This document shows positions 14,530 to 17,045 of a stretch of DNA of 64,000 nt, piece by piece. Where the stretch lies: positions 620,001 through 684,000 of the forward strand of contig CAJFCJ010000025.1 of NCBI GenBank assembly GCA_904063045.1. The letters run 5' to 3'. Under the pieces are notes generated by a model that made no database searches, had not been told where the DNA came from, and saw only the letters and a list, made by a program, of their open reading frames with translations. Position 1 is the stretch's first letter. Each line of letters starts with the position of its first letter. The DNA is from Dimorphilus gyrociliatus. Taxonomy: Eukaryota; Animalia; Annelida. The position numbers and the translations under genes were made by a program.

Positions 14530-17045
14530 ATGGGTAATTGTTGTAACCCAACTCCCAGGTCTTTAGGGAATGGACATGTTCAAGCTAGTGCTCCTGTTAA
14601 AACAAGTGATGTTACCTTACTACCTATGGATACTCGTCCGCAGATTAGAGCACAGGCCGTTATTAAAAGAGTTAGAGCAATGTATGATTATAAAGGGCGA
14701 ACCCCAGACGACTTAAGCTTTGTTAAAGGCGAAATTTTAGATGTATTAGATATGGACAGGTAATATTCCTTTATAAGCAATATATATATAAATGTGTATA
14801 TTAAAGTAGTTAAAAATATTATCTATTGTAAGTTTCATAGATAAAATGAAATATAAGATAATGCAGTTTTTTTTAGTCAAAGATGTTTTAACATATCTAT
14901 TATAAGACCATCATGTATTTTTGGATCTTTTTTTCATTATATATAACCTTTTTCTAGCGATAATGCTGATTGGTGGAGGGCCAAAAGAATTAACTCAAAT
15001 TCTATTGGTTTCATACCTTCGAATTACGTTACCGATGATGATGAAAATAAGATTGAAAGTCAAGAATGGTATTTCGGTATAGAGAGAAGAGATGCTGAAC
15101 GTAAACTGTTATGGGTTGGAAACGAAGTTGGAACGTTTCTGATTAGAAAATCTGCCGATAATAAAGCTTATGCACTTACTGTGAAAGATTTGAATAAGGA
15201 GACAAATGAACATTGTATAAAGCACTATAAAATAAGAAAAATGGACGAAGGAGGTGTATTTATTGCTGCCAGAAGACCATTCAAAAGTATGATGGACTTA
15301 GTTAGACATTATATGGCATCAGCCGATGGTTTGTGTTGTAGGTTAGAAAAACCTTGTCCAAAGGTGCCAGCCACTGTTCCATTTAAACAATTAGAGGTAG
15401 TTTTTCTGATTTTTCATTACTTTTTTTAATTTCTAATTAAAAATGTTGAATTATTCAATTAGGTCAGAAGATCCCAGGTGAAAAGGATACGAAGACTTGG
15501 ACATGGTAAGAAATCGAAATATATATTGGCTGACTATGAAAATAATACAAGGGTTTTGTCATTTCTTTTTTAGGTAATTTTGGTGAAGTTTCGGCAGGAA
15601 AATTTCAAAATTCAGTAGATGTAGCAATTAAATCTTTAAAACCAGGAACGATGCCTCCTGGAGCGTTCCTAGCAGAAGCCAAGAGAATGCATAAATTTAG
15701 GCATCCTAAGCTGGTTCAATTAATGGGTGTATGTACAGATTGCGAGCCAATGTTAATAATTACAGAATTAATGGTTAACGGATCTTTATTAGACTATCTA
15801 AGAGAAAAGAAGAGCTTAGAAAGATTTCCCTTCGCCGATCTTATTGATATATGTGCACAGGTTAGTATCTTTGGCTAATAATATTGATTTTAATATTTTT
15901 TATAACCAGATAATTATGCGTTTTTTCAAAAGCTTTTAGACTTTTGGATAGGCAGCTAGAACATCGCCTATTTCACACAGTACATTTATATCTATATATA
16001 AATATATTTATATGTCTTTAATGTTTTCACTTTCTTATCTCTTATTTTTCTGTGCGAAAAGGCTAAAAAAAAGGACAACTTATGAAATAACTAAAAATTG
16101 TTTTTAGTCCTATACTAACTATTGAGATAGCAGTACGTTGGTTATATTCAGTTTGTTTAAACATTCCTGTTTAAATTTTATTATAATTCCCGATATTCAA
16201 CCATATTAAAAAAACTAAATACATTTAACAGGCCCTAGAATCGTATAAAAGCATAGCACTTACTATAATTTATTATATTATTTAGGTCTATATACTTACG
16301 ATCTACTTAATTGCCATTTAATAAACCCCAACTAAGTATTATTTGCTTAAAAACTTAAATAGTTAATCATTTATGAGTTTTGATTATATTTTACATTATT
16401 TTTTCATTATTAGTAAAATATTGTTATAACTTATACTAAAAACAATTAATCAAATCATTTTTCAGGTTGCTGAAGGAATGAAATATCTGGAGAAGGAAAA
16501 TTTCATTCATCGAGATTTACGAGCGGCCAACATTCTAGTAGGAGAAAATAATGAAGTTAAAGTTGCTGATTTCGGTTTAGCTAAAGAAATTAAGGTGGAC
16601 GATACAAACGACGGAGCAGACGAACGTAAAATCCAGTTATTTTTCTCTTATTTTATCGTCAATTGAATATTTTTTTACTTGTTTTATAGCTATGAAATTC
16701 CCTATTAAATGGACAGCGCCAGAAGCAGCTTTTAAGAGAGAATTTTCTACGAAATCTGATGTTTGGTCTTTCGGAGTTTTACTATACGAAATAATGACAT
16801 TTGGAAGAGTCCCTTATCCATCGCTATCGGGACAAGAGGTTTTGAATAAAGTTTCAGGAAGTTATAGAATGGAGAAGCCTTCAAGTTCTTCGGGACTTTT
16901 TCATTGTCCTGATTCGGTATACGGTCTAATGTTAAATTGCTGGGATCGTGACCCAGAAAGAAGGCCAACATTTGAACATATATATCATTTCTTTGATGAG
17001 TTTGAAATTGCCAACGAACCAAGCTATAAAGATGTATTTTCATAA
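14530..17045 (+). CDS. Src-family non-receptor tyrosine kinase (SH4-SH3-SH2-kinase), atypical activation loop
   Basis: N-terminus MGNCC (myristoylation/palmitoylation), SH3 '[21 protein letters not shown]', SH2 '[12 protein letters not shown]', kinase [31 protein letters not shown], and tail '[10 protein letters not shown]' with the Csk-type Tyr. Confidence 0.95.

Follow-up and report, generated by a model that had tools for sequence, protein, structure and literature searches.

A Src-family kinase gene of Dimorphilus gyrociliatus with aspartate in place of the activation-loop autophosphorylation tyrosine

The stretch of Dimorphilus gyrociliatus DNA analysed here, 64,000 nucleotides long and called the window below, contains a Src-type kinase gene with six coding exons at 14530-17045 on the plus strand, which encode a product of 504 amino acids. 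The transcript extends upstream past 14400, has an in-frame stop upstream of the ATG at 14530 in its spliced leader, and continues in the 3′ untranslated region to 17080 at least. All introns of the gene are of the GT..AG type, and its features are as follows.

14400..14447, plus strand: 5′ untranslated exon; joint 14447>14524 (GT..AG) in contigs of RNA runs X1 and X2
14524..14759, plus strand: first coding exon, with ATG at 14530, Met-Gly-Asn-Cys-Cys, a short unique region and the first half of SH3 (Pfam SH3_1); joint to 14958 in X2
14958..15396, plus strand: second coding exon, with the end of SH3, SH2 (Arg140; Pfam SH2, 2.3e-17) and the SH2-kinase linker; joints in X2
15391-15393, plus strand: Leu222 codon, counterpart of Src Trp260 by the make-up of the alignment column
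15463..15505, plus strand: 43-nt exon, start of the kinase N-lobe; joints 15396>15463 and 15505>15574 in X2
15574..15860, plus strand: N-lobe exon, with Gly-loop, Lys257, helix-C Glu272 and gatekeeper Thr301 (Pfam PK_Tyr_Ser-Thr, 2.4e-20)
16466..16625, plus strand: exon 5, with the catalytic loop, DFG (16568-16576) and the first 16 activation-loop residues; X2 contig with 0 mismatches
16583..16585, plus strand: Lys373 codon AAA, in the column of Src Arg409
16610..16612, plus strand: Asp382 codon GAC, in the column of Src Tyr416, the autophosphorylation tyrosine
16626..16689, plus strand: 64-nt phase-1 intron in the activation loop (GT..AG); joint 16625>16690 in an X2 contig
16690..17045, plus strand: last coding exon, from the loop end (Pro387) to APE (16716-16724), the C-lobe, tail Tyr499 (17025-17027) and the stop (17043-17045)

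At the activation-loop junction, exon 5 ends with the codons A-D-E plus one base, and exon 6, beginning at 16690, gives Pro387 followed by M-K-F-P-I-K-W. Upstream of the kinase gene, on the minus strand at 10499-12369, lie several open reading frames of a major-facilitator or sugar-transporter-type (SLC22-like) gene, one of which, 233 amino acids long, matches Pfam PF00083 at 1.3e-11.

Every joint of the kinase gene is present in contigs of run X2, which are spliced and therefore derived from RNA. The joint across the loop intron, 16625>16690, is contained in a 593-nt X2 contig with zero mismatches, with 163 and 391 nt flanking the joint, and no alternative joint at the activation loop was reported in the X2 contigs. 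A preliminary description of this DNA had proposed these exon and intron coordinates and this reading of the loop, both of which are correct; the other splice sites that it had envisaged as restoring a tyrosine did not appear, the loop having a single joint. Retention of the intron at 16626-16689 leads the frame to a stop at TGA 16664-16666. A hidden exon restoring the tyrosine was considered and rejected, given that a six-frame motif scan of the window found only one kinase and that the RNA contigs hold a single loop joint; likewise, the other loop donor, AAG/GT at 16594/16595, runs directly into a stop when joined to the same acceptor, and that joint is absent from the contigs.

The spliced kinase contigs rank among the deep ones in X2, with a depth of ~700-860. 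An unspliced X2 contig at 15931-16492, which spans the greater part of intron 4 and runs into exon 5, has a depth of only ~10 by comparison and is pre-mRNA or a minor retained-intron form. Within the 605-nt intron 4, a 25-nt AT-rich piece at 15983-16007 is matched by X1 and X2 contigs that run into unrelated flanks, with the same loose end in both runs, and is probably a short repeat or low-complexity match. Run X1 is a second, independent sample, a coral-tank metatranscriptome, and it contains four exonic pieces of the kinase gene at an identity of at least 99%, exon 5 being outside its coverage; in the exons that it covers, only two differences from the window were found, both synonymous and at third positions. 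The presence of kinase transcripts at this identity in the coral metatranscriptome means that Dimorphilus or a very close strain was in the coral-tank sample.

The 504-residue model is identical, residue for residue, to the public Dimorphilus gyrociliatus protein DgyrCDS13472 (P0261); the gene is thus already correctly annotated, but named only 'Tyrosine-protein kinase'. Database searches with the spliced model were run exon by exon, and whole-protein work was done via the identical public protein. Pfam places SH3_1, SH2 and PK_Tyr_Ser-Thr on successive exons, and the N-terminus, Met-Gly-Asn-Cys-Cys, provides Gly2 for myristoylation and Cys for palmitate, a motif that predicts N-terminal lipidation. 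The protein therefore has the domain order of a Src-family kinase (SFK), namely a lipidated N-terminus as read from this motif, SH3, SH2 and a tyrosine-kinase domain, and the earlier proposal of a membrane-anchored member of the family is borne out in so far as an SH3-SH2-kinase protein with a myristoylation signal is encoded. Also correct was the list of intact motifs given earlier (GxGxxG, the VAIK Lys, the alphaC Glu, HRDLRAAN, DFG, the SH2 Arg and the tail Tyr), all of which were found: G236/G238/G241, Lys257, Glu272, HRDLRAAN at 348-355, DFG at 368-370, SH2 Arg140 and tail Tyr499, most of these residues being invariant columns in a 61-sequence alignment. Tyr499 is the counterpart of Src Tyr527 and a predicted phosphorylation site; 86 of 90 rows have Tyr in its column. 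The residue at position +3 from the tail tyrosine was considered as a compensating change and rejected, as Val is found there in Tyr-bearing relatives too.

Among solved structures, the best sequence matches to the last exon alone are Fyn, Src and Hck, with E values of ~1e-35 to 1e-33. The AlphaFold model of the protein (pLDDT 87.7, pTM 0.84) has as its top structural match the closed, autoinhibited c-Src 1fmk, with TM scores of 0.80/0.91 in what is a homolog-guided prediction, and open Src and Csk superpose far worse on it (TM ~0.5). Loop residues 374-385 have a pLDDT below 50, and the model is therefore uninformative on loop contacts or a salt bridge.

Self-phosphorylation of Tyr416 is the step that normally switches Src-family kinases fully on. 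In the Dimorphilus protein, the loop between DFG and KFPIKW consists of 18 residues with 6 Asp/Glu and zero Tyr, exactly as counted in the preliminary description. Asp382 falls in the Tyr416 column in each of two separate MAFFT alignments, and from Asp382 on the alignment to the Tyr-x-Ala-x-Glu of the orthologs runs without gaps through Lys-Phe-Pro-Ile-Lys-Trp. In that column, 79 of 90 rows of one alignment and 54 of 61 rows of the other have Tyr, so that the missing tyrosine is not chance-level variation; the Asp382 codon, GAC, is one base from TAC (Tyr). As judged from its sequence, the protein has no loop tyrosine on which it could autophosphorylate.

In active Src-type kinases two arginines bind the loop phosphotyrosine, and Arg409 is one of them. 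Its column, which is Arg in 53 of the 61 aligned rows, holds Lys373 in Dimorphilus. Across a 90-row tree the loop tyrosine undergoes at least 8 state changes, and of 7 phylogenetically independent pairs, ~5 show the arginine changing along with it and none a change in the opposite direction (median p 0.06), which makes a linked change of the two residues suggestive only. The acidity of the loop was likewise viewed against relatives: Tyr-bearing rows of the annelid subclade carry 2-8 acidic residues, with a median of 5 in a 21-residue loop, and the only new acidic residues in Dimorphilus are Asp382, for Tyr, and Asp385, at a position that is usually Asn. The idea of an acid-rich loop acting as a built-in phosphomimic thus stands in part, with Asp382 in the Tyr416 column and Lys373 for Arg409, and falls in part, most of the acidity being ancestral.

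Asp382 and Lys373 occupy the positions at which Src-family kinases have Tyr416 and its partner Arg409, and Leu222 stands where they have the linker tryptophan, Src Trp260. The loop tyrosine is a regulatory hallmark of the family and not a criterion of descent, and the protein is filed as a variant Src-family kinase. It is not a member of the Csk family, of whose distinguishing traits it shows only the absence of a loop tyrosine, a lipidation motif, Tyr499 and HRDLRAAN all being present.

Relatives were gathered by similarity to the query. One exon, searched against 1.84 billion representatives, gave a listing in which fused multi-kinase gene models took up much of the space; the protein itself was absent from it, and the relatives that it contained led to DgyrCDS13472. 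By BLASTP, full-length identity to the nearest proteins is 50-57%, and identity reaches 57-60% with the N-terminally truncated P0224, the 60% referring to the tree columns. Relatives bear automatic names such as 'SRK2-like' and 'Yes-like', and include Aplysia 'Src tyrosine kinase 1' and proteins of Helobdella, Lamellibrachia, Lingula and many molluscs. A search for closer relatives, for example from other dinophilids, found none above 60% identity among 5.8 billion clusters, and the protein's own 90%-identity cluster has one member. The nearest orthologs all keep the loop tyrosine.

In a maximum-likelihood tree of 47 rows, from which the loop columns had been removed, the kinase falls inside a spiralian SFK clade with support of 100/99. 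It joins a subclade of named annelids and the orthonectid Intoshia (86/99), which we call annelid provisionally, most of its other rows being unnamed transcriptome proteins. Outside the spiralian clade lie canonical Src64B/SRK3-type, deuterostome Src/Yes-type and FRK/Src42A-type kinases; FRK/Src42A-like rows are separated from the kinase by a 100/99 branch, and a Csk-like row is a distant outgroup. The end branch leading to Dimorphilus measures 1.24-1.35 against a median of 0.45-0.47, i.e. ~2.7x, and may reflect some relaxed constraint. The BLAST and phylogeny check proposed in the preliminary description for a distinct Tyr-less clade returned none: in the sequences compared, the Tyr loss seen here is an event of this one lineage, the Asp382 state is confined to one species, and there is no Tyr-less subfamily.

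Further Src-like proteins without the canonical loop tyrosine were observed in Fasciola, Cichlidogyrus, two nemerteans, two acanthocephalans and one starfish, and as two gastropod paralogs; these are P0067, P0062, P0277, P0293, P0031, P0036, P0083, P0245 and P0075, from flukes, a monogenean, ribbon worms, thorny-headed worms, snails and a starfish. Most of them have Lys or Gln at the Arg409 clamp position. Since Tyr-less proteins fall in other well-supported subclades, the losses are independent. Fasciola THD23481.1, the proteins of Tubulanus/Lineus and Pomphorhynchus/Neoechinorhynchus, and Gigantopelta XP_041355435.1 resemble the Dimorphilus kinase in lacking the loop Tyr and often in having Lys or Gln at Arg409, and most belong to the spiralian clade; they differ from it in that Asp is found in the Tyr column of none of them, and several have degenerated further overall. 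That the tyrosine was lost repeatedly and independently in one spiralian clade suggests a predisposition common to its members, which is open to comparative study; the sample was gathered by similarity to the query, and we claim no statistical enrichment of losses in the clade. In the literature, of which our coverage was incomplete, we found no description of a natural Src-family kinase that lacks the loop tyrosine, nor of the Dimorphilus protein, and the Tyr-less feature was not described in the similarly incomplete set of work on schistosome Src kinases and Aplysia Src1.

In vertebrate Src kinases, the linker tryptophan is considered indispensable for the coupling between clamp and catalytic domain. 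Its column reads L/I/M/F/V across the 56-row spiralian clade (one gap) and Trp in 31 rows outside it, and nearly all rows of the clade keep the loop tyrosine. The W260L change had been put forward as a mark of a distinct regulatory subfamily; it turns out to be common to the whole spiralian clade, including Aplysia Src1, whose members are mostly Tyr-bearing. No discussion of this clade-wide replacement was found.

On balance, and with moderate confidence, we favour the view that the Dimorphilus protein is a functional, membrane-targeted ortholog of the spiralian Src1-type kinase, in which a Tyr-to-Asp change has removed the autophosphorylation site and which is active without it, governed by its clamp and tail; here it is catalytic activity, phosphorylation independence and tail control that we infer. 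The loop of such a kinase would neither need nor be able to receive tyrosine phosphorylation, and the fixed negative charges at 382 and 385 could partly replace the phosphate, or might do no more than allow the loop to settle in a substrate-competent state. Control of activity would lie solely with the SH3/SH2 clamp, with tail Tyr499, whose phosphorylation presumably falls to Csk, and with clamp-opening ligands, and the positive feedback through self-amplifying trans-autophosphorylation that characterises ordinary Src kinases would be absent.

Experimental precedent comes from engineered human SRC Y416D, which retains ~43% of wild-type catalytic efficiency (3400 vs 7900 per M per s), and which, combined with loop remodelling, reaches the wild-type level or above and bypasses autophosphorylation (bioRxiv 10.1101/2025.10.15.682502). 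By analogy with these variants, the Dimorphilus kinase would most likely be active without loop autophosphorylation. The same preprint reports Asp to be a poor stand-in for phosphotyrosine in SRC, which counts against the reading that we favour, and names Csk as the only natural example in its comparative section (bioRxiv 10.1101/2025.10.15.682502).

The main rival reading is that the kinase is merely attenuated or drifting, with a Y416F-like drop in maximal activity and an incidental Asp; in this miniaturised animal the protein would then have a low kinase output or serve chiefly as an SH3/SH2 scaffold, and another Src paralog might back it up. We consider this a real but distinctly smaller probability. 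It would fit the long end branch, the predicted disorder of the loop and the roughly two-fold lower efficiency of SRC Y416D alone. It would also fit the clear degeneration of several other Tyr-less relatives, as judged from a set of 102 near-invariant columns (at least 93% invariant across 88 Src-family rows), at which the Tyr-less Patiria protein shows 16 departures and the acanthocephalan ones 10-12. At the same columns, however, Dimorphilus departs at only 3, in each case by a conservative change (Ser to Thr, Gly to Ser and Leu to Ile), compared with a median of 2 for the other rows, so that 99 of the 102 are kept along with every catalytic residue; these few departures and the retained tail tyrosine argue for a working kinase under purifying selection. 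Attenuation is further opposed by the depth of the spliced contigs in X2 and the synonymous nature of the sequence differences, and by the correlated Arg-to-Lys change, which suggests adaptation of the loop and not decay.

A broader and still more speculative scenario, to which we give slightly less credence again, concerns the spiralian Src1-type clade as a whole: having replaced Trp260 with Leu/Ile early, it may have become generally less dependent on loop autophosphorylation, which would explain at least six separate Tyr losses. The Dimorphilus protein would then be the least degenerate case and the only one with Asp, in which a fully functional Src kinase signals without autophosphorylation.

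It is unlikely, by contrast with the reading that we favour, that control of the loop has shifted to Ser/Thr phosphorylation of Thr380 by an acidophilic kinase, leaving a phospho-switch worked by another enzyme. Thr380 does lie two residues before Asp382 with Asp residues around it, and the preliminary description had considered regulation through this Thr; nevertheless, most relatives have Asp/Asn/Glu at the aligned position, just 2 of 61 rows have Thr there, the residue at +3 is not acidic, and no data point to such a kinase. An artefact (a wrong splice site, an assembly error or a pseudogene, the true mRNA regaining the tyrosine) is excluded to all practical purposes by the exact, mismatch-free spliced joint with no alternative seen, the identical protein in the public annotation, the intact open frame with synonymous differences only in the second sample, and the lack of any further kinase-like exon in the window.

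The gene is thus real and expressed, and encodes a new regulatory variant of the Src family, of predicted function, in a single lineage with convergent parallels elsewhere. Activation-loop autophosphorylation is treated as a universal step in the switching-on of Src-family kinases, and a natural, otherwise strongly conserved member with Asp382 and Lys373 provides a test case for whether this step is dispensable in an animal, and for how clamp, tail and Csk cope without the loop switch.

Of the known systems, spiralian Src1-type kinases, known in molluscs, annelids, brachiopods and bryozoans, resemble the Dimorphilus kinase in the order of their domains, in their lipidation-type start, in the tail tyrosine and in having Leu/Ile for Trp260. 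Their loop reads Asp-Val/Ile-Tyr-x-Ala-x-Glu, with Arg after DFG-Leu-Ala, whereas in Dimorphilus the Tyr is replaced by Asp and the Arg by Lys, and the loop, at 18 residues, is shorter than in most annelid-clade rows (median 21). Vertebrate c-Src, Hck and Fyn have HRDLRAAN and the tail Tyr in common with it; relative to them, Dimorphilus lacks Tyr416 and has Lys for Arg409 and Leu for Trp260.

Csk and Chk are active without loop phosphorylation. Like the Dimorphilus protein, they combine SH3, SH2 and kinase domains, lack the loop Tyr and have Lys after DFG-Leu-x. Csk differs in lacking a lipidation signal and a tail tyrosine, in its shorter loop and in having HRDLAARN, and the poor fit of the Dimorphilus model noted above is to the Csk arrangement. 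A parallel at the loop itself is with engineered SRC Y416D and its variant P8E2 (PDB 9V4E), which carry the same Tyr-to-Asp change at the autophosphorylation site and are active without autophosphorylation; the match of 9v4e to exon 5 reaches slightly deeper into the loop than that of wild-type Src. In P8E2, three deletions shorten the loop, whereas the Dimorphilus loop exceeds that of c-Src by two residues and has other substitutions, including Arg409 to Lys. With these differences, the Dimorphilus kinase presents itself as a natural counterpart of the engineered Y416D kinases.
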